From the NCBI GenBank assembly GCA_904063045.1, contig CAJFCJ010000006.1:1589601-1653600 (forward strand): a stretch of 64,000 bases of DNA, read 5' to 3'. The position numbers and the translations under genes were made by a program. The stretch is from Dimorphilus gyrociliatus. Taxonomy: Eukaryota > Animalia > Annelida. Below are positions 1,242 to 64,000 of this stretch, piece after piece (position 1 is the stretch's first letter; each line of letters starts with the position of its first letter). Below the pieces are notes generated by a model, which ran no database searches, had not been told where the DNA came from, and saw nothing but the letters and a program-made list of their open reading frames with translations.

Positions 1242-2636
1242 TTACTGTCTATAAATTAACTTATTTAATAGACGCTTTTTTAGATAAATGAAATTTGAAC
1301 AGAAAGAATCATCTTTCTCTGATAGTATTCTATCATCTTCAGGCCTATAGTCTTTTGACAGTACATTCCCTATCCCTAAGATTTTAACAATGGATGCTCT
1401 AGGACCATTTTGTTTTGTGTATACTTCTTTTGTTTCTAACCATGTTCTATCGAGATTGTTTGTTATAGTATATAATGTTTGATAATCGTCTAGAACTGAA
1501 GATGACTCTAGACAAGATATTATGTCTTCTAGGCCCAATTTCAGTGCATTGTTTACACTACGAACAATTCTACCCAAGGACTTTCTGTCAACATTAAACA
1601 AGTTAGGATGTGTTGCTGTCAAAGCCTTTGTATCTGTTTGGAAGGAACCGTACAAAGTTGCTCTTGAGAAGTTCGTCAATACTGGGCATGTCCAACCTTC
1701 GCCATCGACGTAGGTGGTAACTATAGAGTTCATGCTAATATTATTGACGATTATCGACTTCCTATGACATTTTTGAATGAGTTTAAACAAATCTGCTAGT
1801 AGTTTCATCCATCTCCAGTTTGGCATCAGTTTCTTTTTCGGTCTATGTTCTCTATTGTATGTTTCATGTATTAAGAGACGATGGAGAGTAGCAATTTCGA
1901 ATGATCGCGAATCCCCAATTAATAATGTAACAAGAGCTACAGGAAGGAAATGACTATTTGTCATCAAATTAACAAGACCGAATGAAGACGGAGCAATATT
2001 TTTAATGTTTCTTCCAATGTAGTCTAGGATGTGGGCCTCCTTGGTTAAACTGATAGCTATTGGACTCTTGTCATTCAATTTATATATTTTTATTGCCACC
2101 GCGAAACGATTCTCTGAAACAGGATCGCGAAGAAAACCACCGATAACTACACCTCTCTTCCCCGAACCTAACAGGATCGGCTCGTTACTTTTGTCTTTAT
2201 AGGCAATTTCTAGTTGAGAAGGATTGATAAAATTCAAAGAGAACATATTAGGATACGTTCCTTTGTCATTTCCAACTAACGCCCTCCATTCTTGATTGTA
2301 TAACATTTCTAGTTGAGAATGGTCTAGAATGCGTGGATTGAGTAAAGGAGTTACGATTTTTTGAAAGTGATTATCAATGACAGGCGTCCAATATCGTCCT
2401 CTGGTAATATGATGATCGTTGATACGGGATAAAAAGTTGTTGAGAAATTGCTTAGAAGTCTTTCTTGAACTAAATCTGCGGATAGATAGATGAGAAGGCT
2501 CCAGATCTGTTGAAATAGAATCCAACCTCTCTTTACGATTTGCAAGGATTAGTTTGGATTTCTTTCTGGAGTATATTATTGTAATTCTTTTCTCACGAAA
2601 ATAAGGAACACAATTACTCCAACTGTGTTCTATCAT
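1242..2636 (-). CDS. Protein-kinase-fold protein, predicted pseudokinase (464-aa ORF; N-terminus may extend upstream)
   Basis: Gly loop LGSGKRG, VAIK lysine and alphaC Glu (TKEAHIL) are present. The catalytic loop reads IVNNISMNS and the DFG position reads TNF. Confidence 0.75.
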   Translation of the reverse strand: MIEHSWSNCVPYFREKRITIIYSRKKSKLILANRKERLDSISTDLEPSHLSIRRFSSRKTSKQFLNNFLSRINDHHITRGRYWTPVIDNHFQKIVTPLLNPRILDHSQLEMLYNQEWRALVGNDKGTYPNMFSLNFINPSQLEIAYKDKSNEPILLGSGKRGVVIGGFLRDPVSENRFAVAIKIYKLNDKSPIAISLTKEAHILDYIGRNIKNIAPSSFGLVNLMTNSHFLPVALVTLLIGDSRSFEIATLHRLLIHETYNREHRPKKKLMPNWRWMKLLADLFKLIQKCHRKSIIVNNISMNSIVTTYVDGEGWTCPVLTNFSRATLYGSFQTDTKALTATHPNLFNVDRKSLGRIVRSVNNALKLGLEDIISCLESSSVLDDYQTLYTITNNLDRTWLETKEVYTKQNGPRASIVKILGIGNVLSKDYRPEDDRILSEKDDSFCSNFIYLKKRLLNKLIYRQ

Positions 2637-3957
2637 TAAGTCGTCTGATATTTTTTTGCCTTCTTCTTTCTAAGCCCCCTAAGATTCTTTTTGATCGCTG
2701 CACAAAAGGAAATGGAAAGAGCAATTGAAAGGAAAAAGTTGCTGTTGATATTCTGGAAAGAATGGCGGAAATGGTTGCTTTATCCAAGTAAAACCATGTT
2801 CCAAACTTTCTTTCTAGGTCAAATATAAACTGCAATTTCCTTGAGTATTTTAAAATTTCAAATACAAAATAAAAAACAACTCTTACTTTAACTGACTAAA
2901 ATAGTAACAAAATTGTCTTGTAGTCCAATATTACATTGCTTTTTTTTTCTATAATATTTGTAATAGTAAACGAATCTTTATATTGATTAAATAGATAAAG
3001 CATTGGCCTTTTAAACTTGACGCTTTCCTAGCTTTTCCTATAATTCTTTTGATATTTTTATCAATAGATGGCGCTACAGTATTCATGAACCTTCTTTTAA
3101 TCCATCATCAGACACGCATGTGGACCCACGCATATAAAAGTTATCAAGTTATCTCCCACCCTCCTCTCTCTCTCTCTCTCTCTCTGCTTCCTTTTCAATA
3201 TTTTTCATTAAAAGTCATATGATCAAAACTAACTTTGTTACATTTGTATTGACTGTTTGTCTTGTCATTTACGCCACAGAATATCACAATTCAATTAGAT
3301 TAAAATATTTGGCAAACACTACTTCTATTATTTCTTTTCCTTTCTAAATTTACGTGCTTTTTAGTGTTTTTTTTGTTTCTAATCTTTAAAACTATAGAAA
3401 ATAAGAAGAGTCTAGGAAAACTTACAAGAACCAACTTGGTAATTAATTTGCATAGCATCTGTTTTCCGTAATAATATGAAAAAGATATAAAAAAACCCTC
3501 TTAATATAGACCGACTAAAGGCTTTTTTAAGAAACTGATTATATATTATATTCTAATAGCCAGATGTTATATATTTTAACTTTTCTTGGACAGATTATAG
3601 TAAAAGCAAAATAAGCGATAGGAAGAAGATAGGAAATATATGATTTAGGGATTATAGGGAAGGTAACTAGTTAGATATGAAGGTAAACAGAGGTAGAGGA
3701 AGAATAAGCATTCTTTCGTATAAAATAAAGCATCTTTTATTCTCATTTTTTGTTCAATTTATTAAGACTATTAAAAGACTCCAGAGATTATTTATGAAAT
3801 GCCTACATATATATACACACTGTATATAGGCATTTTTAGAGAGACTTGAAAATACGCATTGTATTTAGAATGACTTTTTCTTTATTATTTCAATTAGATG
3901 TTTTCTTTTTTGTCCTTCTTAAATAAATATTTAAACAAATCGATTTAATTTTAATAA

Positions 3958-4807
3958 TCACCAACAAGATACCAATGACCAGTAGCAAGGTTTACCACGT
4001 TTTTTGTCTATCATATCTTCTACATTCCGGTTTTCGTTCAGTGTTTTCAATAGTAAATTGTAAAACTTTGCAAATTGTTCAGGTTTTACAGATTTCTGAA
4101 AAATGATATAAAAAAAACAAACAAGAAGATAAACTAATGTTATCATTTAATATATTAAATAAAAATAACGACAGTATAAACTATAAAAAAAAGCTGGGAG
4201 AAGAAGTAGAAAAGAAAGTGGAAGAAGAAGAAGAAAAAGAAAAATTGCATAATAAAAAGAACTTAGAAAGAAAGTCGGACAAGATGAAAAGACTTAATTG
4301 ACATAATTGACTATGACTTGATGAATAAGAAAAAAGTAACTTGATTATAGTTTTAAACTTGATATTTTACTAATCACTTATGTCTTTATATTCTAATTAG
4401 CATTTTATATTCATTGAATATTTGTTTTTCCTTACTGATTCTCCTCCTTTTCCAGCAAATCTTATTTTTGTCTTTTTCATCTTTCTATCGTTATCTTCTT
4501 CTTCTTTTCTTTCTTTTTCTTATATATATATATATATATACAGTATATCTTTCTTTCCCTTCCCTCCTACACTCTTCATTCCTCACTGCGTCTGTCTAAC
4601 TTCTTTTTGTCTCTTTATTTTGCACCTTCGCTCTTTCTCCCTCGTTTTCTCTATCTTGTATAGAAAAGAATGAAACAATAAAATACTTACTTGAATGTCA
4701 TTAGCTCCTGCTACCATTGATATTTTACGGGCTTCATTTTCAATACTCCGCTCGTACGACGAGCCGACAAAAAGACAAGCCAGAAGAATGACAAAGACGG
4801 CCGTCAT
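3958..4807 (-). CDS. Allatostatin-C/somatostatin-like neuropeptide precursor, 84 aa, exons 4807-4691 and 4095-3958
   Basis: Signal peptide MTAVFVILLACLFVGSS; phase-0 intron CAA|GTAAGT...TTTTCAG|AAA; KKR cleavage site followed by C-terminal GKPCYWSLVSCW-stop with C-x6-C spacing. Confidence 0.85.
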
Positions 4808-4841
4808 GTTTGATTTGAAGCGCTCCGCCCATGCAAAACGC

Positions 4842-4868
4842 TTTTTATAACGCGAAGGAGTGACGTCA
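4842..4868 (-). promoter_or_regulatory. TATA box (TATAAAAA, 4849-4842) and perfect CRE (TGACGTCA, 4861-4868) upstream of the neuropeptide gene
   Basis: Exact motif matches 35-60 bp upstream of the ATG at 4807. Confidence 0.6.
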
Positions 4869-6109
4869 TTCGAAGCTTTTCCGAAGCAAATTATTTTTTT
4901 TTGTGTAGATATACAGCAATTAAGGAAACTACTAAGCTACTTGTTACGGAGATGAAATGTTAATTAATAAAACTTTTGCATTTTACTATCTTCTTTATAT
5001 AGATGGAAAGTTTTTAAAATGTAACGCTTTTCAATCAATAATCGATATTATTAATATTATTAGAAACTGTCACCGATTTGTTCTTCTTTTGATATATTCA
5101 CTTAATTAATAATATATGAATAAACAGTGGGAAAAAGAGTATTTTTAGATCGACCCTTAAACCATTATAATTTACCTTATTGAACAAATTGAAAAAGAGT
5201 TGTGAGTTGTTGTACGTACCATCTATTTTCGTAATTAAAGGTTTATACTTTCTAGATAGGAGAATGAGAGGATAGCACTGTAAAAATTTACTATCTCTAG
5301 TAGTTTGCAATAAAGTAAATACATGTTCAATGAAGTTATAAGAGGGATATCATTATGTTTCAACTACGTAAGTAGTATAGAGAAAATAGATGATGACCCA
5401 CTTTTTCTTCAAACCTTACTGATTTATTAATTTTCAATAGTAAATATACATTATGTCCTGATTATATATATAGTTTGAATGCAATATAGTTGTATATATA
5501 TATAGATATATATTTTTATATATTATTCGCTTTGTCTCATTGTTTATGCCTATATATATATAATTGTTACATTGTAAAAAAAAAAAGAAAAAACAAAAAA
5601 TAGATGATTAACTTTATATTCTAGAAATGGCCGCGACAAGTTCAAGTGTTTAAATAGAAAATCCATTTAGGAATTGTGAGCTTGTTGATTTAATAAAAAA
5701 AACATGATTTACAACACTTCCAGTACGTAGTTTTACCCTAAGAGCTACAGTAGGTACATATTGTTGGAAACCTTTGAAATACTCGACGATAAGGGAAGAA
5801 CGATGCTAAATTGAAACAAAAAAACGGGAAATGTATTATGATCACCAAATGTGCTCAAACTTAGTTTGTCACGTAAAGTAGAGAGATAAATTCTTCTGCA
5901 ACTCAGGTGTTGGTAAAGAAACCCGGCTTTTAATTGGAGGAGAAAAAAAAGGATTGACATTTCTTATTCTTTACACCTACCTAAACTACTTTTAGCCAAT
6001 GATTAAGTTATTTATATATTTTACCGGAGAAATTAACTTGAGATTATCATTTAAAAAGTACTAAATAGAGTTCTATTAATAAATTACATTAATTCACCGT
6101 TATTCCCTT

Positions 6110-6113
<4 letters not shown>

Positions 6114-6174
<61 letters not shown>
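6114..6174. repeat. (TA)n microsatellite, about 30 units
   Basis: Direct reading. Shorter (TA)n, (CT)n and (GA)n tracts lie near 3164, 6528, 7686, 22750, 27040, 39160 and 42540. Confidence 0.95.
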
Positions 6175-6180
<6 letters not shown>

Positions 6181-6522
6181 GCGATGATTATATGTTTAAT
6201 TTATCTCATATATGCATTTATAGCCTCTTTTTTAATCAATCATTTCTTCTATAATGAGAGAGAGAAGGGTAAAAGGTGTATGGAAGAATAATGTCATCAG
6301 GTGTTAAATCAGATATATAATATAAGCTTTAAATCAAAAATGAAATCCCTAAACAGAAACTACAGCGTAACAGAGTATGCATCGACTACTCAGGGGTTTT
6401 CATAAGGAAGATGGAGTTATTTAATTACCAGTTTTCACACTATCATCTTGTACTGCTTTTTTTTTCTTTTTAATTTATCTAATAATCATTCTCTCTCTCT
6501 TTCTCCCTTTCTCCCTTTCCCA

Positions 6523-6553
<31 letters not shown>

Positions 6554-7684
6554 GTTCTCTCTTCAGTAGGCAATTTAATAGAATTAGTCCATATTTCGCC
6601 TCTCATAGAATGATTCTGTAGAAAGAGTAACCTTTCTACTGATGCTCATTTCTCATTTAAATATTAATTTTTCTTTAATTATACTATTATTTACTATTCT
6701 TATATATTTATAGACATTTCTAAATTGTAGTTTCAACGCAAAAAATCTATTAAAAGGTAGTGAAACATTATATTCTTCCATAGCAAATTCAATTTACGAA
6801 AAAATGGGAATAATTGAAGATAAATATAGTGCATTAAAGGTTAATATACAAAGCCTCAATGTGTTTTTATATAGAGAAATTTAAGAATCGTAGTTGAATA
6901 TAAAGTTCAAGGAACTCTATTTTGTAGGTCGTCTCCTCTCTCATCAACAAAGATTACGAGTGTAATTTCATAAAGCATAACATACGATTTATTTTGTCCT
7001 AGAATTTGGAACAATACAACAGTGTTTTGTCTCTATTAACAAACTTCTAAAATGAACAGTTAAGTCTATTATATGGGAGGAGAAATTATTTGCGAGGCTC
7101 TATAAATGATATATTAAAAGTTCTGTTCCCTTCTGAAATATATTGAAATAAGCAATGGCTAAATATTTTAATGAGCTGGAAGACATTTTCACTTAGAATA
7201 AGAACGAAATTACCAAGTATCAATGGGAAAGTAACAGATGTAGTACTGAAACTTTTCAATAAAGAACTTTAGACCATGATGTTACAAGAGAGTTTCACTT
7301 AAACATGTTCTATTTCCGTTTGCCTATAATATATTTAAACATAAGTAGTTTTCAAAGTTGTCCAGAACAATCTCCTTTCACAAATGGTAAAATGTTTATT
7401 TGTTTTACTATTTACTATCGTTTTTATCGCTTGGTATTTAAATTATGTGAAAGCGTATTATCTTAAACAAAAAAGAAAATTTACGAAAGAGATAATGATG
7501 TAAGAAGAGAATTAAATTTTGATTACCATAGTATCATTTTATCTACAATACGCTATTTGTTTAATTCTTAAGATGATACGGTGAGTAAAATGCACTCTGA
7601 GGAAATAAATTGGGAATTTTTCATATCATACATCAATCCTAACCCGTCCAAGATCAGATGATAAATCTCTTATATTTCTATTCG

Positions 7685-7718
<34 letters not shown>

Positions 7719-8557
7719 AGCAAATTATCAAGAATAACCTTTTCATAATTACTCCATAAAAGAATGAACTTGAAGGACTTAATTTACATCTTTATATTTT
7801 CAACACGGTAAAATTGTTAACAATTATAGATTCAACACAGTACTTAATTATTACAATCTATTCCAGTATTAGTCGCCAGATTCTGTCGAGCAAAGACTGT
7901 AGAACGCCAACTCGGATGAATTATTTCTCCCTATGCAGAGCAATATATTATCTGAGATGATATTTGCGTTGAAAACAGTTGAACCATACGCCGGTGAATG
8001 GAGCCTGAAGAGTCGGTTCTTCCCAAAGGGATGACCGACTAATGAAAAGTTGACTGAAGAGAAGTTTCTCTATTACTAGACTATTAGTAAAATAAGAAGT
8101 CGAAATAAATTGACCTTTGAAAGTTCAAGAACGAATAGTACATTACATTACTATAGATTCACAGAATGAAAAGCTCAATGCACACATAAACGGCTAACAA
8201 AATGTTTAAAAAATTTGCTAACGTAACCATTTTTGAGCAATGTATAAAAAGTATATCATTATTACTAATTATAGCTGTTCTTCCACCACATGCAGTCATT
8301 CTATTAAATGGTATATTGGATAATTAAGCACACATTTAATTCAGTAAGGTGGGGGTAATAATGAGATACACAGTATGATATCTTGTTTTAAATTATTATA
8401 ACCCCTCTCTTTCTCTCCCTCTCTCCCTCCTTCTTTCCTACTGAAAAAATCTGTATGAATAATCATTCAGATAAAGTAAAAATATTGTATTGAGATTTAA
8501 AAGACACAAAATACGAATATTATTTTCCCAATCCAATTAATAATAATTCACTTTTTT

Positions 8558-9676
8558 TTAACTTAATTGAAATATAAGGCAAGTTGTGTTACTTCCTTTT
8601 TTCCCTCCGAATTGAAAAGTCTTCGATTCTAGTTTATTTTTCAACTTGAATCCTAAAAAGTTCGTTTTTCTCTTTTATTTAACATTGTATTATTGATTAT
8701 ACATACTCATTCCAAAGAATTTTACTAATTCCTCTTCAGTCCAATTGCAGGATGTTATAATAAATAGACTGTCATTCTTTAACATACTTTCAACATTATT
8801 TTTATACCATAACTTTTTTTCTTGAACGTTTTCATCGCATAGGCTTATAGCATCAAATGTACCTATAAATTGTAATTAGGATGATCTTTCAAATATGGAT
8901 AAACTTTGCAGAGAAATCACCTTTATCTAGAACAATGTCGAATTTTTCCCAGTCAGCTTGTTTTTCCGTTAAATCGGAAACTGTATACGTAATATCTGGA
9001 AAATTATTCGAAATTGCGAATTTCTTAGCAAAATCAACAGCCCATTGAGAATAATCCACCCCGTGTAAATTTGTAAAATTCTTCTTTCTCTGTTTTAAAA
9101 AGAATAAAGTAAAATATATTACTTTTTCTCTTATTTTCTGTAAATGTACTATCGTTCAATGGCGCCATCTATAATATATATGTTGGAAACTATTAATTTT
9201 CATTTGTTTTAAATAATATAGCTGAATAGAATAATTATCTGTATCATAGCGATTACAGTTAAAGCTAATTTCATGCAATATTTAAATGACACTATATATT
9301 TTAGAAAATTACCAGCTCTAAGAGAGTATAGCCATTTCCACAGCCCAAGTCTATTATTGAAGAATCTAATTTTGTAATATTTTCACATATCCAATCCACC
9401 ATTCTTTTGACACTGTCTTTTCCGAACCAAATCTCGTCTGTATATCCATTAATATTAAAATTTTCTATTTCACGTTTATATGTAGAATCCCAGCTGTGGG
9501 CGATAATATAATTATATTAGAATATTTCATTACTTTTACTTTAAATTATATTTAAAGTGTATTTAAGTAACTGAAAATATTCAAGGGAATTATTAAAATC
9601 AAACTCACAATGTTTTTTGGCCTAATTCTGATGAATATTTATCTATTTTACAATCAGTGTCAGTAGGCTCAGCCAT
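8558..9676 (-). CDS. EEF1AKMT2: EEF1A lysine methyltransferase 2 (METTL10/Efm4 family), 5 exons
   Basis: Spliced translation MAEPTD...SSELGQKTFWDSTYKREIENF...DEIWFG...IIDLGCGNG...GVDYS...LDKGTFDAISL...ITSCNWTEEEL...FQFGGKKG. Canonical GT-AG introns. Not in the ORF track because the exons are short. Confidence 0.92.
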
Positions 9677-11504: not shown

Positions 11505-12536
11505 ATGGCATCACGAAAAAAGGTTCTCCTAAAAGTTATAATTCTCGGCGATAGCGGGTTAGCATAATTTTTTTTAATTAATTTCACCCAATTAAGAATC
11601 ATTTTAGCGAATAGAAGAAATTACGATTCTATTTTTTAATTATACATATTCAATTTGAACCTTGAATTGAACAGTGTTATATATATAAATAGGTTAAAAA
11701 TATAGAATCTCTACTTAAATCTACCCCTCCTTTTTAAGCCTTTACTCTCAACAAAAAAAATTGCAAGTCATCAGTACAGCTCGGCCAAATCTTATGATAT
11801 TTCATTTTTAATCCAAAACAGAGTTGGTAAAACGTCGCTTATGAACCAATATGTGAACAAACGATTCACTAATCAATATAAAGCAACAATTGGAGCGGAT
11901 TTTCTTACTAAAGAAGTCATGGTTGATGATCGTTTAGTAACGATGCAAATTTGGGATACAGCAGGCCAAGAACGTTTTCAATCTTTAGGGGTTGCTTTCT
12001 ACAGAGGTGCAGATTGCTGTGTTTTGGTTTATGACGTGACTCAAACGAACACTTTCAAAGCGTTGGACGAATGGAGGGACGAATTTTTGATCCAGGCCTC
12101 ACCTAGAGATTCCGAAAATTTCCCATTCGTTGTCATCGGGAACAAGATCGATTTGGATAATCGGTCAGTTAGTACTAAAAGAGCTCAGAATTGGTGTCAT
12201 TCAAAGGGAGATGTTCCATATTTTGAAACAAGTGCAAAGGAAGCATTAAATGTTGAACAAGCTTTTCAGGTAATGAATCATCCCATTTGAAACTAGGTTG
12301 TAATAATTTCCAATGTCAGTCAAAGATATCATATGGTCTTTGTAAACTATTTCATAAGATAGTGTCATTTTTCCTTTGCAAGCTGTCCATACTTAACTAT
12401 TTTTTTAACTCCACAGGCCGTTGCGAAGAATGCTTTGGCCCAAGAAAATGAAATGGACGTCATGAACGAATTCCCTGCTCCTATTACCCTAAATCCTACG
12501 AACCAGCCAAGCAAAGATAATTCCTGTTCATGTTGA
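11505..12536 (+). CDS. RAB7A: Ras-related protein Rab7, 3 coding exons
   Basis: [18 protein letters not shown]|[37 protein letters not shown] and C-terminal CSC prenylation motif. Confidence 0.98.
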
Positions 12537-12973: not shown

Positions 12974-13706
12974 TTAGACTTGATCGAGAGGAACTGGAAG
13001 TTTTGTTACTACGTAGGGTTTTGGAGCTGGGAGAACTCTGCATGCCTTTATCGTTACGTTGAGATTTGGACGATCGTGACCATCGGTTCGTACATTTTGT
13101 ATAAGGTCAACTATTCTCATGCCTGCTAATACCTTACCAAATACAACGTGATGACCATCCAACCAGGGAGTGACAACAGTCTGAATAACAAACTGTGCGC
13201 CATTAGTATTTGGTCCAGCATTTGCCATAGAAACGAATCCTGCTCCGTAGTGTTTTACAAGGCTCATATCCTCATCTCTAAAGTTGACGAATTGGCCATT
13301 GACAACGAAAATAGAGTGTCCACCTCTACCGTTGGCGTATTCGTAATCACCTCCTTGAATCATAAAATCTTTAATACATCTATGGAAAATGGCTTTTCTA
13401 TAGCCATACCCATATGTGTGATTACACAAGTGTATATGATTCCTGGTTGTTATAGGGTATGTATTACCGAACAATCCCAAACGAATCGTGCCTATATCCA
13501 TACCTCCGATGGCGATGTCAATTTCTGTTTCATTGGTAACAGTAAGAGGATCTTCATTCTTATGTGGAACTACCTTCTCAACCGTTTTATCGTGTTTTAA
13601 CGTCAGTTTTGGTTTCAAGAATACATCATCTTTGAGCTTTGATAAAAATGAAATGTATATTAGTAAAAACTAAACGTGTCAGACACAGTATGGTACGCCC
13701 GTGCAT
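12974..13706 (-). CDS. PPIB: Cyclophilin-type peptidyl-prolyl isomerase (cyclophilin B/C-like); start uncertain (ORF from 13618, candidate ATG at 13706)
   Basis: FHRCIKDFMIQGGD, SMANAGPNTNGAQF and WLDGHHVVFGKV. Confidence 0.85.
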
Positions 13707-23574: not shown

Positions 23575-25564
23575 ATGGAATTCAATAGAACGACATCGAT
23601 TGTTCTGTCTGGTACAATTATAACAATCGCTTCAGCCTACTATATCAAAAAGAAACTTTTACGAAATAGGTAAGAAATCCTCAAATAGAATTTATACGTG
23701 TCTTATTTCTTAAGAAAGAATAATTGAAATAGAACACCAACATTATGTAAGATCGTGTGACGCCTTTTGATAAGTCATCGATAAAGTATTTGGCTTATAT
23801 AAAAGATACAATATTCAGAGCATTATCATAATGACTCATACAGAAAAAGTTTGATGATTTATCTTCTTCCACGATCTTTTCTTAGATTTTTGTTGATTTG
23901 TTTGTCACGATATTTTGTTACTATTTTTTAGACGGAAGAAAGAACCACCAATAGTTGCTGGACATCTTATTTATGGTTCTGCTAAAGATTTTAATGAAAA
24001 TGCTGTTGAATTTTTGCACAAGAGCGAGGTAGAACATGGAAAAGTCTTTACAATTCGACTAGTTAATCAATACTTAACAATAATCACGGATCCAAGATGT
24101 TACGAGTTGGTACATAGGGAAAAGAATTTCGACTTTGATCCAATTCAGGAACAAGTAAATAGAAATGTTTTCAACTTTAACGTTATACACGCTGGTCAAG
24201 TTATTAAGGATATGTCGCGAGCGACAAAGGGACAATGGCTAATTAAAGACGTTTCAAACTTTTCGGACAAACTAAATCTTGCTCTAAATAGATTTGAGCA
24301 AGAGAACGTTGGCTTAAGACAATTTTGCGCCGAAACGATATTCGACGCAATCTTTAATACAGTTTTCGGACAATCAGATAGGAATGCTCCTTTTAATCCG
24401 TTGAGAACTTATAAGAATTTCGAATATTACCACAAATATTTCAATTACATGTGGCTGGGTCTACCGAAAAAGTTTATGCCAGGAATTATGGACACTCTTT
24501 GCGATATGTGCCAACAGCCTTCCGCCGAAGAGCTCCTTTCGAGGGAAGACTGCTCAGAGTACATCAAAAGAGGCATTCGTCACCTACTCGAAAATGGTCA
24601 GACCGAAGCCGATGTAATTGGTCATAATTTAGTTATGCTTCACGTAAACTACAATACATTTCGTATGGCTTTTTGGGTATTGTATTATTTGCTTCGAGAT
24701 GCCGAAGCTTGGAAGCACCTTTCGGAAGAAATAGAAGAGTTATCTGATAAAACTTCACTTTCAACTGGAGACGTTGATCGTTTAAGAGTGCTTGGTAAGT
24801 TTTATCCTAAAGTTTTCACTTTTTTAAACTGTGTCCCTTAACTTCCTACGTCGTAAATTTCCCTGTTTTTTTTAAGCATAGAAATTTACGACCGTTTAAG
24901 TGGATGCATAAAAAGATGAAAGGAATTTAGAATATTTCCTTTTTTTTAAAAAAAAAAACATTCACATTTATAAAAATATTTTATTTTCTCTTTAAAACAG
25001 ACTCAATCGTTCAGGAAAGTGCGAGATTAAGCAGCGGAGTTTTTATGGTTAGATACGTTACAGAAGATACCATGTTCAAAACACCAGACAACAAAGAGTT
25101 CTTAATAAGAAAAGGAGATAGAGTAGCTATGTACCCTCCTGCCATTCATAAGGATCCCAATATTTTCGCTGATCCTTTGGTAAATATATTTTATTGAGAT
25201 TTTTCATTAAAAAAAAAATTAATTAAAATATTTTTAATAAAAAAATTCTCTTTCTTCTTTATTTGAACAGAAATTTCAATTCGACCGATTTATAAGTAAG
25301 GTATTTTATAAAGATGGAGAAATAGTCAAAAATCCCGTTATGCCTTTTGGTACTATTTGCCCTGGGAAGAGGCTGGCCCTTCTTCAATTGAAATTGTTCA
25401 TTATCAATGTAGTCTCAAATTTCGATGTTAAATTAAATGATGGAGAAACAACCGAATTAGATAATACGTATCATGGACACGAAGTTCTACCGCCCACCAA
25501 CGACGTACAAATGACAATCAAAAGGAAACGGGAAAATCTCTCCTCACTTGGGTGCTTTTCTTAA
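23575..25564 (+). CDS. Cytochrome P450, CYP7/CYP8-clan-like; exons 23575-23669, 23932-24794, 25001-25179, 25271-25564
   Basis: N-terminal membrane anchor, EPPIVAG hinge, ExxR (ESAR), FDRF and heme-ligand PFGTICPG. Confidence 0.92.
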
Positions 25565-28605: not shown

Positions 28606-31600
28606 TTACTTGCGGTACGTTTTGCGTACAGGGGATGAAGTGCGCATTGAAACAGGAGGCGAATGTTGTGGAAATCTTAATGGAGATCTTTGACGTCTCT
28701 TTGGTGAGACTCCAATAGAAGCTCCTAACTTGTTGGCCTCGTGTTCCAGCAGAAGTGAATCGAGGGTTGGATCCCTTGATACGCTCGTCAAAGACTTGTC
28801 CAAAATGTGGCGAAGATCATCCATTTCGTCCGCTTTACGTTCCGATCTGGAAATATACTGTTGTCTCTTTCGCAATTCTTGAGCTAGTTGATCTTTTAGG
28901 GTTGCGACTTGTTCTTCGAGACCTTTTACTCTTTGTCTATGAGCCATTTCTCTAGCTTCGAGAGTTCTTTCAGATGCCAACTGGGCAGAACGGAGACGCT
29001 CGGTTTCCATTTCTGTTTCGGTTCTATGGCGTGTAGTCAAATCGATCAGACGCTGAGCATGCTGTTGTTCTGCTTCTGCAACTTGCGACTGCAAATGTTG
29101 AATTTGTTTTTGTAATTCAATATTGTCTTCTTCTAGTTTAGCAACGCTTCTATCCAAGCTACGACGTTCATTAGCAACGCTCGAGAAGAATTCATCATTC
29201 TTCAATCTCTCTCTTTCCACCTTATCCAAGGTCTTTTTCAGAGCGCTCTTATCCTTCTCAAGGCGCATGGAGGCTTTTTCTACTTCTCTCTTTTCATTCT
29301 CGGAACAAGCAAGCGTTCTTTGCAAACTGATGACTCTTTCACTTAGACCTTGTTTTTCTCCAGTCATTTTCGATAATTTCTGATTCAATTCTTGTTCAGC
29401 CTCTTGTCTTTGTACTAGAGCTGTGTGTTGTTGCCTATTTTGGCTCTCTAATTCAGCTCTTCGTAGTTCTGAATCACCCAATTCTTGTTGAATATTATGG
29501 ATTCTTTCCAAAAGAGCGGCATTTTGCTTCTTCGAATCAGTTAAAGCAGCTCTGGCAGCATCTAAACGTTCTTGTAGAGCTCGTCTATCATGCTCAGAGC
29601 TTGTTAAAGCTCTCTGTAATTGAGCAGAGCGTTGCTGGAGCTCATTCAAAGCAGCTGTTGATTCGTTTAGAGATGAATTCAGTTCTTGGACCTTATCCTT
29701 AACAACAGATTCTTCTTGTTCAGTTCTGGCTAGAGCTCCACTTAGCCTATCGACAGTCAATTGTAAGCTTTGCGACTTTTGGTCACCATCAGCAACTTGT
29801 CTTTGTAAGCTCTCAACTCTTTCGTTCAAGACTTGAACCTCGGTTTCTTTGTCATTAAGAGCTAATTTCTGTCTCTGAAGATCTCCTTCAAGCCCTCTTC
29901 TGATTAATTCGGCTTTAGTTACACGACTTTCTGCGTCGTCAACGGCAATTCTAAGTTGTTTTACTTGTTCATCCAAGCGAGCCTCATTTCTGTTGGTTTT
30001 GGTACACTTATCTTCCAATTGGTTCTTTTCGCTTTCCAAAGCGCTAATTTGACGTTCAGCAGCGCTCAATTTTTCGCCAGTTGCTTTTCTTTCTCTTTCC
30101 ATACGTCTTATAGTTTCTTCTTGAAGCATTAGTGCAGTCTGAGCCGATACAAGTCTACCATCAATTCCTCTCTTGTCCTCTTCAATGTCGGTAATACTCT
30201 TTTGGAGTTGTTGAAGTCTGGTCTCAGCTCTTTCGCGTTCATCTTCGACCTCTTTCAGGTGCTCAACAGCAGAGCGAAGTTGCATATTAGCATCATCCCT
30301 CTCACGTTCGGTGTTGGCTAGCGTCTGGACAAATTGTCTTAGACTAGTTCTAACTGCTTCTGGGTCGATATCGGCAACGCTGAACGAGTTCTCATCAGAG
30401 AATCTTGTAGGTGAATGGGAAGGTGAGCGACGAGGAGAACCAGTTCTTGGAATAGGGCTACCGCGTCCTTCGGTTGTGGTTGCATGAACAGGAGACATAT
30501 TTCTTCTTCTCGGACTTGGGGAGCGAGTTCTACGGAATGGGCTGCCTGGTCTTGAAGGCATTTCTTGTCTGAATCCGATGGTTCTCCTCAGACTGGAGTG
30601 GATTGAAGAGAGTTTGAATTCTACATCTCTTTTTGCCCCTTCCACTCGCGCTAGCTGAGCTTCAAGAGCGTTGACTCTTCCATCTGATGCAGACATTTTC
30701 AGACGAAGCTCTGCCAATTCACCATTTGCGTTCTCTAATGATATTTCCAAATTACGTTGTTGATCCTCATGTTTTCTATCGTTTCTTCTGGCATCCTCAA
30801 GGGCCAATTCATAATCCTTTTGCTTAACCCGCCATTCATCCTCTAATTCTGCTCCCTTTCTTTGACTCTGTGAGAGTTCCTTACGAAGAGCTTCTCTACC
30901 AGCTTCAGTTTCGACCAATTTCTGCTTCAGGTTGAAGCTTTCTCTACGTAGATCTTCTTCGCGTTCTTCCATTCTGGAAATTCTGTTTTCCAATTCTTCA
31001 ATGTCTTTCACCAGCTTATTTCTCTCTTGATCAGCTTGTTTCAATTGTCTGCGAAGCTCTTGTTGTTCTCTACGACCTTCTAAGCGAGCCTTCTCAACAT
31101 CTCTAAGGCTGGCACGAAGTTCAGATGACTCCTTAGCAACAGACATCTTTTGTTCATCTAACATATTATTCTTTTGCTTTTGTTCATGTAGAGCGCGGCT
31201 CAATTCAGTCTTCTCACCTTCGACTGCCTTAACTTTACCCCGAAGCTCCTGGCTTGTCTTTTCAATTGATTCTTTTTCGTGTATTTCCTCTGTGAGAGAA
31301 CGTTTAAGATCCAAGATATCTTTTCTGAGAAGCTCTCTTTGTTCTTCACCTTCTCTATTAGACCTGTTGGAATCTAGTAATTCCCTTCTCAGGGTATCTC
31401 GCGCCTCTTCAACCATTTTGAGATTGGCTTTAAGCTCTGCCGCTTCCTTTAGAAGATTTTCTTTCTGTTTATGGAGATCTGTAACCTGTTTGGTAAGATC
31501 CTTTATTTCTCTATCGAAAACGGATCTATCTCTTTCATTTTGTTGTCGTTGAGCGGACAAATTGTCTTGTAGGTCAACCATTTTCTCTTGATCTTGTTCT

Positions 31601-34600
31601 TGTCTCATAATGGCTTCTCTCTTTGTTCTTTCTAGTTCGGTGTTTAAGTTGCTTAAATCTCTTTGGACGCAAGAGAGTTTCTCAGCCAGAGCACAGCGTT
31701 CTTGTTCAGCCATTGATAAAGCCTGTTGTTTATCGTTTTCAGCTAACAAGAGACTTTCGTCACGTTCCTTTTGGACTGCAATCAATTCATTTTCCAACAT
31801 TTCTTTTTCATTTTCAGTTGCATTAAGAATATCTTCTTTTTCACGATTGAATGCTCTAATTGCTTGCTCTCTTTGAGCTGCTGATTCGTTTCGATTGCTT
31901 TCTAAAAGTTTCGTTAAACGTTCAACATCCTCTTCATGAGTTTGTTGCTCATGTTTTAAAGATAATTGAAGATCCTTCTCAACTTGTTGAAGTTTATTCG
32001 ATACAGCATCACGAGCTCTTTCTAGCCGTTCGATTTCAGTAGCCATCTCCTGCCTTATTCTTGCAACTTCGCCAGACAAATTATCACGTTTAAGCATCAG
32101 CTCTTGATTCTCAAGCTCCAACTGTTCGCGTCTGCTATCCAATCCTCTGTTTGCCTCTTGAACTTCATATAATGTAGTTTCCAAAGCATCCTTATCTTGT
32201 CGGAAAGCAGCAACATTTTCAGAAAGAGTTCTAACTTCTCTTTCAGAAGATGTCAATTGAACGGCTAATTCGGCTTTGTCGTGTGTCAAATCTTCTTTCT
32301 CTTTAGCCATCCTTACAATAGTTTCGCTTAATCTTTCCAACTCCTTTCTGGAGTTTATCAATTCTTCAGCGAGAGCATTCTTTTGTCTGCTGACCGTTCC
32401 AAACTGCTCGGTAAGGTCTGCTCTTTCGCGATTAATTGCTGCTATATCATCTTCCAACCTACTCTTCATTTGCTCGGTCAAATCCAAATTCTGGTTAAGA
32501 CCAGCCTTTTCAGCGTCCAAATCCATCTTTTCTTGTTCAACTTTAAGTAACTCTTCTTGTAGACCGCATTTTTCTTGTTCAACAGCTTTCTTTTGACCAA
32601 GTAAGGAGTTTTTATCTGACTCCAAATGCATAATCATTTTGTTCAAGTCGATCTTATCCTGTGCTAGACCTTCATTCAAATTTTGCAGTTTCGAAAGAGC
32701 ATCTTTAAGTGAAGCTTCCTCGGCTTTCACTTTGTTCAATTCTAATTCAAGATCAGCTTTCTCCAATTCAGCTCGAGAAAGTGCTTCAGCTATTTCACTC
32801 TTCTCTCCGTCAAGCACTTCTTTGTCAAGCGTAACCTTTTGTAGGAGATCCTTTGTCATCACAAGATCCTCCTTGAGTCTACTCATCTTATTTTCGGCTG
32901 CTTCAAGCAGTTTATGGCACCTTTCGTTCTCTCTAACTTGTCTGTCTTTATCTTTAGATATATCATCACGTTCTTCCTCAAGAATATCCTTTTGTCTATG
33001 CAATTCGGCAATATTCGTTTGAAGGCCGTGTAAATCTTCAGTTAGGCTCTCAATTTGTTCATTCTGGGAAGTTCTAATTCTTTCCAGCTGTTCTCTCTCA
33101 GAAGTTACGGAGTTCAAAGCCGATTTGAGTTGTTCATTGGCTCTATTTATTTCGTTCTTATCTCTCAAAATATAGTCACGCTCATCTTTGAGGCTCATGA
33201 CGTTCTGTTCCAACTTCCTTCTCTCTATCTCAGAATTTTCCAAGTCTTTTCTGGACCCATCTACACGATCTTTAGCCGTAGATAATTTGGCTCTCAATTC
33301 ACTAACTTGTAATTGTCGCTTGTTCAAAGCTGCCTGAACTGCATTGAAAGTTGAATCAGCAAAAGATGGCGCTCTAGATGGTGAAAGACTTCGAGTTCCC
33401 GGTGACCGTCCTCTAGCTGACCTTCCAGTACCCCTTCGTGGACTGGTGGAACGTGGTCGCATAACACTGGTCGAAAGATCTGGGTCGAAATCATCTTGCA
33501 TAGATTGGTCAGCATCGTCGATTACCTTTTCGGCAATCTTTCTTAACGCGTCGTGCATAATCTCCGTATCGGTTTCTAGACCAGAAGATTGAAGGGGAGC
33601 AGAAGTTTCTCTGGTGATTGGCCCCTCGATTCTCGAACCCTCCAATTTATTGATCGTTCTCTGCAGTGTACTGATCGTCTTATCCTTTTCGGCCAATTGA
33701 CTCTTCAATCGATCGTTAATCACACCTAATTCGTTCAATCTAGCATTCAAATCGGCGCTCTGCGCGTCAAAACGCGCCTGAAGGTCACTGTTTTCTCTCA
33801 TCCTTTCTCGAATTTCTCTGTCGAGATTAGATTTTTCACCCCGTTCTCTATCCAATTCCAGTTGTGTTTGAGTATCGGCGTTTCTCATATTAGCCGACAA
33901 ATTCAAAGCAGCCGAATGCATAGATCTAGTAGCCCTGTTCAAATCAGACCGAATATGAGACAGATCTCGATCAGTAGCGTTTTTCATGTCTGCGAATTGG
34001 CGTCTGAAAGCGACGACGGCTCTCCATAGCTGTAAGAGTCTAGAATGTTCAGCGGAGAAATACTCGTTGAAAGACTGTTCTTCATCCCTCCATTCGGCTT
34101 CTCTGGCCTCTAATTCCTCTCGGGCTCTTTGCCAGTCAGTGGTTAATTTGTGAATGTCTTGCGTGAGCGTCTGATTGGCGGCTGTTGCTTGGTCCAGCTG
34201 TTCTCTTAACATTGAATTTACGTGCGAAAGACTTGCATTCTTTTGCTGTTCCTCTTCAACTCTGATGAGAGCACTTTCAAGCTCCCCGTTTGAAATATCA
34301 TAACTTGGAACTTGTCTTTGCTGCCTTTTCTCACTTTCCATAGCTCTTATGCGCTCATCAAGTTCTCCACATTTTCTCTTGTATTGCAAGACCTAAGAAA
34401 TAAATTTTTATAACAATTTCTCGAAATAAAAATCATAAATTAAATTGTACATACCTTAGCTTGTAATTTTTGTACTAGTTGACCTTGTTTTTGTTGACCA
34501 TCTTGATAAGCTTGTAATTTGCGTTTATAGCCACTATGATCATCTTCCAAACGTCTTCGAAGTTCGACGTTTTGTTGGAAGAGTGATTTAGAAGAAGGGT

Positions 34601-63031: not shown

Positions 63032-63533
63032 TTAATCATCGCAATCCAACGAATCGGGATATAAATGCTTGCAGGCTAAGTATACGACTGCCTCATAGGT
63101 AGCCATCATTATGGCCGTGTTAGGTATTTGACGAATTAATTGCGTAGTAAGTCCTCTATATAATCCTTTTGGCCCTTCTTCTCTACCCACTAAGGCTAAC
63201 GTTTGCCAAAAACTTCTATATCTATTACCCTCTTGTCGGAGTCGAGTACGAGCAACTTCGTGAGGATAGGCTAAACAAGTAGCTATAGTTTTGGATACTG
63301 CGCCGGCAGCCATGAATTCCATGAAATCCATTGTTGATCTATCTTCCTCATGAATAGATTGTCCTTTTATTTCACGTAATCTCGCTTTAATGGCTTCATA
63401 TATGACGAAATGAATAACAGTTTCACTGATTCCGTAATAAGAAGCAGTCATTCCCTTATAAAAACCTTGAATACCAGTCGTTCTCATTACATTTAATACA
63501 CACTGACGAACAGTAAGCTTCCCGTTACCTTTC
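63032..63533 (-). CDS. SLC25A36: Mitochondrial pyrimidine nucleotide carrier SLC25A33/36, last exon only (gene continues beyond window)
   Basis: [16 protein letters not shown] and [14 protein letters not shown] carrier signature, [14 protein letters not shown]; acceptor TTTACAG at about 63534. Confidence 0.93.
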
Positions 63534-64000
63534 CTGTAAATACAAAGTGCACATGTAAACATCTACGTTGTAAAGTAGAGCAGACAATTGGTGTCAATAT
63601 AATTGATTTTTGTTCGCCTTGACAGGATTCGTCTTAGTAAAAAGAAGTTACATAAACGAGTTTTTAAAAGCTAATTATAATTTAGCACCGTCGTTGCTTC
63701 TGGATTAATATTTATAATAAAATATCAATACCAGTTTAATGGTGCATGCGTAATTTTACTTTCTTTCAGACATAACAAGAATAAAAATTCGATTAGTTAG
63801 GCCTAGTCTCATCAATGTCGGCCACGTTTTCATCACGTGATATCTAAAACAGACATCTTCTAAGTATGGTATACAAAAAATGATTTTCATAGATAGAACA
63901 GCTTCTTACTAATCATTATCAACTGAAAAGTCCAAAAAAATATAACAAAAACTGGCCTACGTGCAGATTTGAATGTATTTCTATTTTTAAAATGTAGGTG

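Follow-up and report, generated by a model that had tools for sequence, protein, structure and literature searches.

Does an 84-codon reading frame, split over two short exons in an annelid genome, encode a neuropeptide precursor of the allatostatin C (AstC) type, and how would its unusual peptide ring then relate to the AstC genes already published for the same species and to the somatostatin and urotensin peptides? The locus is found on scaffold CAJFCJ010000006.1 of assembly GCA_904063045.1, which represents the published genome of Dimorphilus gyrociliatus (PMC10735302). It was analyzed within a stretch of 64,000 nucleotides (positions 1,589,601 to 1,653,600 of the forward strand), here called the window, and all coordinates refer to this window. 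We regard the locus, with a probability of about 0.8, as a genuine, expressed and unannotated D. gyrociliatus gene for an AstC-type preprohormone of 84 residues, a further paralogue beside AstC1 and AstC2 with a putative receptor and a presumed function.

Gene structure, transcription and coding constraint

The gene calls of GCA_904063045.1 are empty between window positions 2637 and 8689, so the AstC-type gene is unannotated in the public record. Read from the sequence it has a two-exon layout on the minus strand (exons 4807-4691 and 4095-3958) with the following features:

4861-4868, no strand assigned: TGACGTCA palindrome of the cAMP-response-element type, 54 nt 5' of the ATG (sequence)
4843-4849, minus strand: TATAAAA box, about 36-42 nt 5' of the ATG (sequence)
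4691-4807, minus strand: coding part of exon 1 with start codon, signal peptide and start of the proregion, 39 codons (sequence; 4691-4756 in the spliced contigs)
4757-4807, minus strand: predicted signal peptide, residues 1-16 or 1-17, with the hydrophobic core VFVILLACLFV (heuristic)
4096-4690, minus strand: phase-0 intron of 595 nt, GT..AG, from GTAAGT to a T-rich tract and CAG at 4098-4096 (sequence and contig joint 4095/4691)
3958-4095, minus strand: coding part of exon 2 with the remainder of the proregion, KKR, mature peptide and TGA (sequence and contigs)
3997-4005, minus strand: KKR prohormone-convertase site (sequence; putative cleavage)
3961-3996, minus strand: predicted mature peptide GKPCYWSLVSCW, 12 residues, with a presumed Cys4-Cys11 disulfide (by analogy with AstC) and a free C-terminal Trp
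3746-3957, minus strand: 3' UTR of about 212 nt with AATAAA at 3763-3758 (end of the X2 contig at 3746)

The start ATG at 4807 stands in the context AAC ATG A, with A at position -3. At its 3' end exon 1 reads ...GAC ATT CAA and is directly followed by GTAAGT, the donor G being position 4690. The intron falls between codons and preserves the frame, and exon 2 contributes 45 codons plus TGA with the C-terminal end ...DKKRGKPCYWSLVSCW before the stop.

The RNA evidence consists of assembled contigs from two public runs of two studies, X1 and X2. In both runs one contig contains the joint 4095|4691, from which precisely 4096-4690 is missing (plus-strand CT..AC, corresponding to GT..AG on the minus strand). 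The original prediction had joined two short open reading frames by a phase-0 intron and had proposed a search for RNA across 4096-4690; precisely the predicted junction was found in the assembled contigs of the two runs. The X2 contig, from a 2017 run labelled as a single organism, extends from 4746 to 3746 with 100% identity to the window and a word depth of 1449, and AATAAA is located 12 nt ahead of its end. Because an intron with canonical boundaries is absent from it and because it ends at a poly(A) signal, it is best read as cDNA. The X1 contig, from a marine metatranscriptome of 2025, covers 4756-3830 with approximately 96% identity and 12 differences from the window. Coverage stops at 4746 and 4756, respectively, which leaves the first 17-20 codons, including start codon and signal peptide, outside the RNA contigs. 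Support for the start and the signal peptide therefore comes solely from the open frame, promoter-like elements and composition.

Ten of the 12 differences in X1 are listed by position, five in the coding region (3982, 4006, 4030, 4039 and 4051) and the other five in the 3' UTR. All five coding differences are synonymous changes at third codon positions (P about 0.0003 if changes were random and 0.004 if only transitions are counted). The remaining two lie within about 44 nt of the end of a piece, and their place is accordingly either the distal UTR or the initial ~14 codons of exon 2. Codon 15 and all later codons of this exon, among them those for KKR and the entire mature peptide, encode the same protein sequence in X1 as in the window. 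Transcription, exact splicing and the reading frame of the AstC-type gene are thereby demonstrated, and the listed part of the protein is conserved in the related X1 sequence. A genuine transcript without coding function, or one whose reading frame stays untranslated, is extremely improbable. The frame comprises only 84 codons and its 5' end lies beyond the RNA contigs, but the coding differences listed are exclusively synonymous while the UTR changes freely, the phase-0 intron keeps the frame, the first ATG follows directly after the TATA box in good context, and the frame displays the full layout of a prohormone.

Judged from the promoter-like elements, transcription is predicted to start near 4815-4820, and the presence of TGACGTCA beside the TATA box suggests a regulation of the CREB/ATF type. 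The same palindrome occurs in five copies in the 64-kb window (4861, 11255, 14363, 21450 and 36399) compared with 0.38 expected from shuffles, and TGACGTCACT is among the ATAC-seq open-chromatin motifs in the supplement of the genome paper (PMC7854359). For these two reasons TGACGTCA probably belongs to the widespread promoter elements of the D. gyrociliatus genome and does not tie the gene specifically to somatostatin genes. The intron of the AstC-type gene is about nine times as long as the median intron of the species (66 bp) and holds a (TA)n microsatellite together with purine-rich runs; long introns of D. gyrociliatus tend to contain open-chromatin peaks (PMC7854359).

Pfam identified these further features in the window:

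11841-12287, plus strand: Ras-family GTPase
12977-13618, minus strand: cyclophilin
23915-24838, plus strand: cytochrome P450 fragment
28609-34389, minus strand: rootletin, an open exon of 1927 codons
58823-59185, plus strand: sulfotransferase
63035-63562, minus strand: mitochondrial carrier

No GPCR was detected among the scanned open reading frames of at least 110 residues in the window. An intronless frame of 464 residues (1242-2636, minus strand), which the original reading of the sequence had called kinase-like, is annotated publicly and gave no match in Pfam at E<=0.001. The stretch 2637-8689, of which the AstC-type gene occupies a part, amounts to ~6 kb without a called gene in a genome of very high gene density (~209 genes per Mb).

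The predicted peptide and its family

The core of the putative signal peptide has a mean Kyte-Doolittle hydropathy of 3.49, and according to the -3/-1 rule (a heuristic) cleavage is permitted after Ser16 or Ser17. In the rest of the precursor KKR is the single strong processing site, and it is located immediately before the final 12 residues (...DKKR followed by GKPCYWSLVSCW). The ring of this peptide, CYWSLVSCW, is of the C-x6-C type with a six-residue loop and ends in V-S-C-W. The stop codon directly follows the Trp, and since there is no Gly between them GKPCYWSLVSCW cannot be amidated. KKR and an unamidated C-terminal C-x6-C-W peptide as in AstC, both part of the original prediction, are thus borne out by the sequence.

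Maturation may proceed as in other peptide hormones of this layout. The signal peptide would be removed after Ser16 or Ser17 and the propeptide routed into the regulated secretory pathway; a prohormone convertase would cut after KKR and free the C-terminal 12-mer. A bond between its two Cys would create a ring of eight members, six of them loop residues, and leave a free Trp at the end. Neurosecretory cells could then release GKPCYWSLVSCW, which might act as neuropeptide or hormone at an AstC-type (somatostatin-receptor-related) GPCR. An AstC receptor label is found among the annotations in the GPCR figure legend of the genome paper (PMC7854359).

In protostome ASTC peptides the loop always comprises six residues, Asn is present in the loop of most ASTCs, and the loop begins with an aliphatic residue in annelids and molluscs but with an aromatic one in arthropods and nematodes (Koch et al. 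2022). The gene described here agrees with AstC in loop size, C-terminal position and intron. It encodes a lone peptide, which is set off by a basic cleavage site and forms the very C-terminus of the precursor (DKKR, then GKPCYWSLVSCW, then the stop), and a single aromatic residue, the non-amidated Trp, follows the second Cys. The N-terminal signal peptide typical of a secretory precursor is recognized by the heuristic, in the stretch outside the RNA contigs. The loop Asn typical of AstC is not present and Ser is found in that position; further AstC rings without the usual Asn are those of a chiton and of nemertean C2 (both with His) and of Lingula (with Trp). With regard to the subtype of annelids and molluscs, in which the loop opens with an aliphatic residue (L or M, typically as part of L-V-N), the peptide falls outside because its loop starts with Y-W-S.

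Homology searches, in which both exons were queried separately, returned no related precursor. The word-index protein search with the 62-residue open reading frame, of which the exon-2 part was scored, gave no candidate, and a full HMMER scan of exon 2 against 1.84 billion representatives gave 0 matches. Pfam at E<=10 reported nothing for either exon but a sub-threshold DUF3294 (E=0.19), the ESM Atlas feature search yielded no usable match, and Rfam had no match on the window. An orthologue in a second genus was found neither by the word-index search nor by the HMMER scan nor among the metagenome contigs. A degenerate DNA pattern of the ring had 17 matches in these contigs, none of them (0/17) with a cleavage site or a stop in its context, and they were dismissed as chance occurrences. 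Since there is no significant protein match, the family assignment is based on short-motif and gene-structure criteria. Taken loosely, the motif (dibasic site, C-x6-C, end) arises ~0.7 times per shuffled window and is found at four loci in the actual window. The three further loci from this six-frame scan were rejected; they have no signal peptide, splice sites or RNA, and their count is near chance. The significance of the locus lies in the combination of the motif with signal peptide, splice sites and RNA.

In the original prediction the Trp was said to recall the core of somatostatin and urotensin II, and the gene could indeed be thought to be somatostatin/urotensin-related (SSRP-like) instead of AstC-type, with Tyr-Trp as a degenerate F/Y-W-K core. 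An aromatic residue and then Trp occupy the first two ring positions, comparable to F-W in urotensin II, and the peptide is C-terminal and presumably disulfide-bridged. However, all described protostome members have a loop of four residues that contains a WK motif, and the Trp is preceded by an aliphatic residue (Ile or Leu), e.g., ...CIWKVC... in Capitella (Koch et al. 2022), whereas in the D. gyrociliatus peptide Ser follows the Trp, Tyr precedes it, the loop has six residues and the ring ends with VSCW as in annelid AstC. Compared by loop length, the six residues of GKPCYWSLVSCW differ from the four of protostome SSRP-like peptides and urotensin II as well as from the ten of somatostatin-14. 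Moreover, the usual SSRP-like gene consists of three exons separated by one phase-0 and one phase-1 intron, and its mature peptide extends across exons 2 and 3 (Koch et al. 2022). The two exons and the one phase-0 intron of the present gene deviate from this, a weak criterion as two of the three Dimorphilus SSRP-like genes are also without the second intron. On the WK motif and on loop size the SSRP-like assignment is rejected, and we judge it very unlikely; with neither WK nor a four-residue loop the Trp reveals no somatostatin/urotensin affinity, and Trp is also present in the AstC ring of Lingula.

It is likewise unlikely, if less remote, that GKPCYWSLVSCW is a secreted cysteine-loop peptide particular to its lineage, such as an antimicrobial, pheromonal or glandular one, which has acquired the AstC shape by convergence and does not act on an AstC receptor. 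Such an origin would be compatible with the lack of significant homology to known precursors and of an orthologue beyond close relatives, with the measurable rate at which the short motif arises by chance, and with the very high depth of the X2 contig that also fits a gland product. Against it stands the coincidence of several independent AstC features, and the bona fide AstC genes in the same genome represent a possible source of duplication. An AstC-type preprohormone gene remains our preferred reading of the locus.

AstC-type genes in Dimorphilus gyrociliatus

The neuropeptide file of the genome paper (PMC7854359, Supplementary Data 2) contains two AstC precursors, namely 'Allatostatin C 1' with the C-terminal end ...RKRNPIQCLVNIVSCWKK and 'Allatostatin C 2', which has 77 residues and the C-terminal end ...RKRDPYPCLVNIVACWQRRK. 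Both have the ring CLVNIV[S/A]CW. With the present gene added to these two, D. gyrociliatus has at least three AstC-type genes in its 74-Mb genome. The same file contains none of the strings LVSCW, NCW and CYWSLVSCW, and they are likewise missing from the main texts of the searchable literature; ASTC sequences of D. gyrociliatus may be included in the supplementary data of Koch et al. (2022), and the gene may already be described there. The gene had been announced as a divergent or second AstC paralogue. A paralogue with an atypical ring it is, but it is not the second one, as AstC1 and AstC2 were already published. The accompanying comparison, with YFN in arthropod AstC and LVN in lophotrochozoan AstC, is right according to the published sequences.

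What is new is a real, expressed, constrained and unannotated AstC-type gene with a ring atypical for its phylum; the family is already known. An expressed and constrained annelid ring with Tyr-Trp-Ser breaks the rule of a uniformly aliphatic first loop residue in this phylum. In addition, GKPCYWSLVSCW provides a concrete candidate ligand of 12 residues for the putative AstC-type receptors of this species. The case also illustrates that short two-exon neuropeptide genes can escape both annotation and a dedicated peptide screen, even in a well-studied genome.

A candidate peptide from another D. gyrociliatus scaffold, NNAKQCFFHAINCW, has a ring (CFFHAINCW) that is nearly the ring CFFHAVSCY of nemertean AstC2, and this similarity suggests an annelid orthologue. 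If it is correct, the label 'nemerteans only' of the latter would be wrong and the CYWSLVSCW gene would be a plausible second member of the aromatic AstCs in annelids. We tentatively propose, as a rather doubtful extension, that the aromatic-ring AstCs (CYWSLVSCW together with the candidate ring CFFHAINCW) might be annelid members of an old second lineage that dates back at least to the spiralian ancestor and is maybe shared with arthropod AstC/CC. Both lineages would then have been kept and duplicated in D. gyrociliatus, possibly with separate receptors. The origin of AstC and somatostatin is actively debated with respect to orthologues versus paralogues and to the ancestral gene number (Koch et al. 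2022, with reference to Zhang et al. 2022).

Comparison with known AstC systems

Annelid AstC peptides are represented by pQPVQCLVNIVSCW from Platynereis, taken from a supplementary FASTA file, and by AstC1 (NPIQCLVNIVSCW) and AstC2 (DPYPCLVNIVACWQ) from D. gyrociliatus; a machine-read annelid alignment in the Platynereis supplement was left out as corrupted, since it gave identical rows for different species. The new gene shares with them the secreted precursor, the one C-terminal peptide after a basic site and the non-amidated end. Its ring closes with V-S-C-W like those of Platynereis AstC and of D. gyrociliatus AstC1 (CLVNIVSCW), and with 84 compared to 77 residues its precursor is short and of similar layout as that of AstC2. 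In contrast with annelid AstC, however, loop positions 1-4 are Y-W-S-L instead of L-V-N-I, which means that Asn is missing and the first residue is not aliphatic. Furthermore, the stop comes straight after the Trp, whereas annelid AstCs carry a tail of KK, KRK or QRRK, and the conserved 'QLE[IV]' stretch of AstC1-type precursors is not found.

Rings were also scored with BLOSUM62, using the ring nonamers only and the seven non-Cys positions in them:

D. gyrociliatus AstC1: 18
Daphnia AstCC: 17
candidate ring CFFHAINCW: 17
arthropod AstC: 14
nemertean AstC2: 12

These ring scores do not discriminate between AstC subtypes.

In arthropod AstC, AstCC and AstCCC the rings are CYFNPISCF and CYFNAV[T/S]CF. 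Similar to these peptides GKPCYWSLVSCW starts its loop with Tyr and a second aromatic residue, has V/I-S/T ahead of the second Cys and an aromatic residue after it, and there are multiple paralogues within one genome, which in arthropods reportedly originated from a local triplication. It differs from arthropod AstC by Trp for Phe, by Ser for Asn and by the lack of Pro or Ala at position 4, besides belonging to another phylum, and its gene differs from ecdysozoan ASTC genes, which possess an extra phase-2 intron. The ring CQVWIVSCF of Lingula AstC is a precedent for Trp inside an AstC ring. Molluscs are reported to possess a single AST-C-like precursor gene, with one exception in which two genes encode identical mature peptides (PMC8514136), and nemerteans have two AstC paralogues.

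The second of these paralogues, 'Allatostatin C2 (nemerteans only)', is DYVRDCFFHAVSCY-amide and was confirmed by mass spectrometry (Thiel et al. 2021). Like the D. gyrociliatus gene it represents an AstC-type gene additional to the canonical CLVN-type. In both peptides the loop opens with aromatic-aromatic-polar residues, the polar one not being Asn, and closes with V-S-C-aromatic. Both precursors have KKR ahead of the peptide and, by eye, a Leu-rich LL.LL upstream in the proregion. The nemertean subtype is characterized by CFFHAVSC followed by Tyr-Gly, and GKPCYWSLVSCW, with CYWSLVSC followed by Trp and the stop, does not belong to it. The nemertean peptide is amidated (CYGRK) in contrast to GKPCYWSLVSCW, and two of the seven non-Cys ring positions are identical when the rings alone are compared. 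The N-terminal extension ahead of the ring comprises five residues in nemertean AstC2 and three in GKPCYWSLVSCW.
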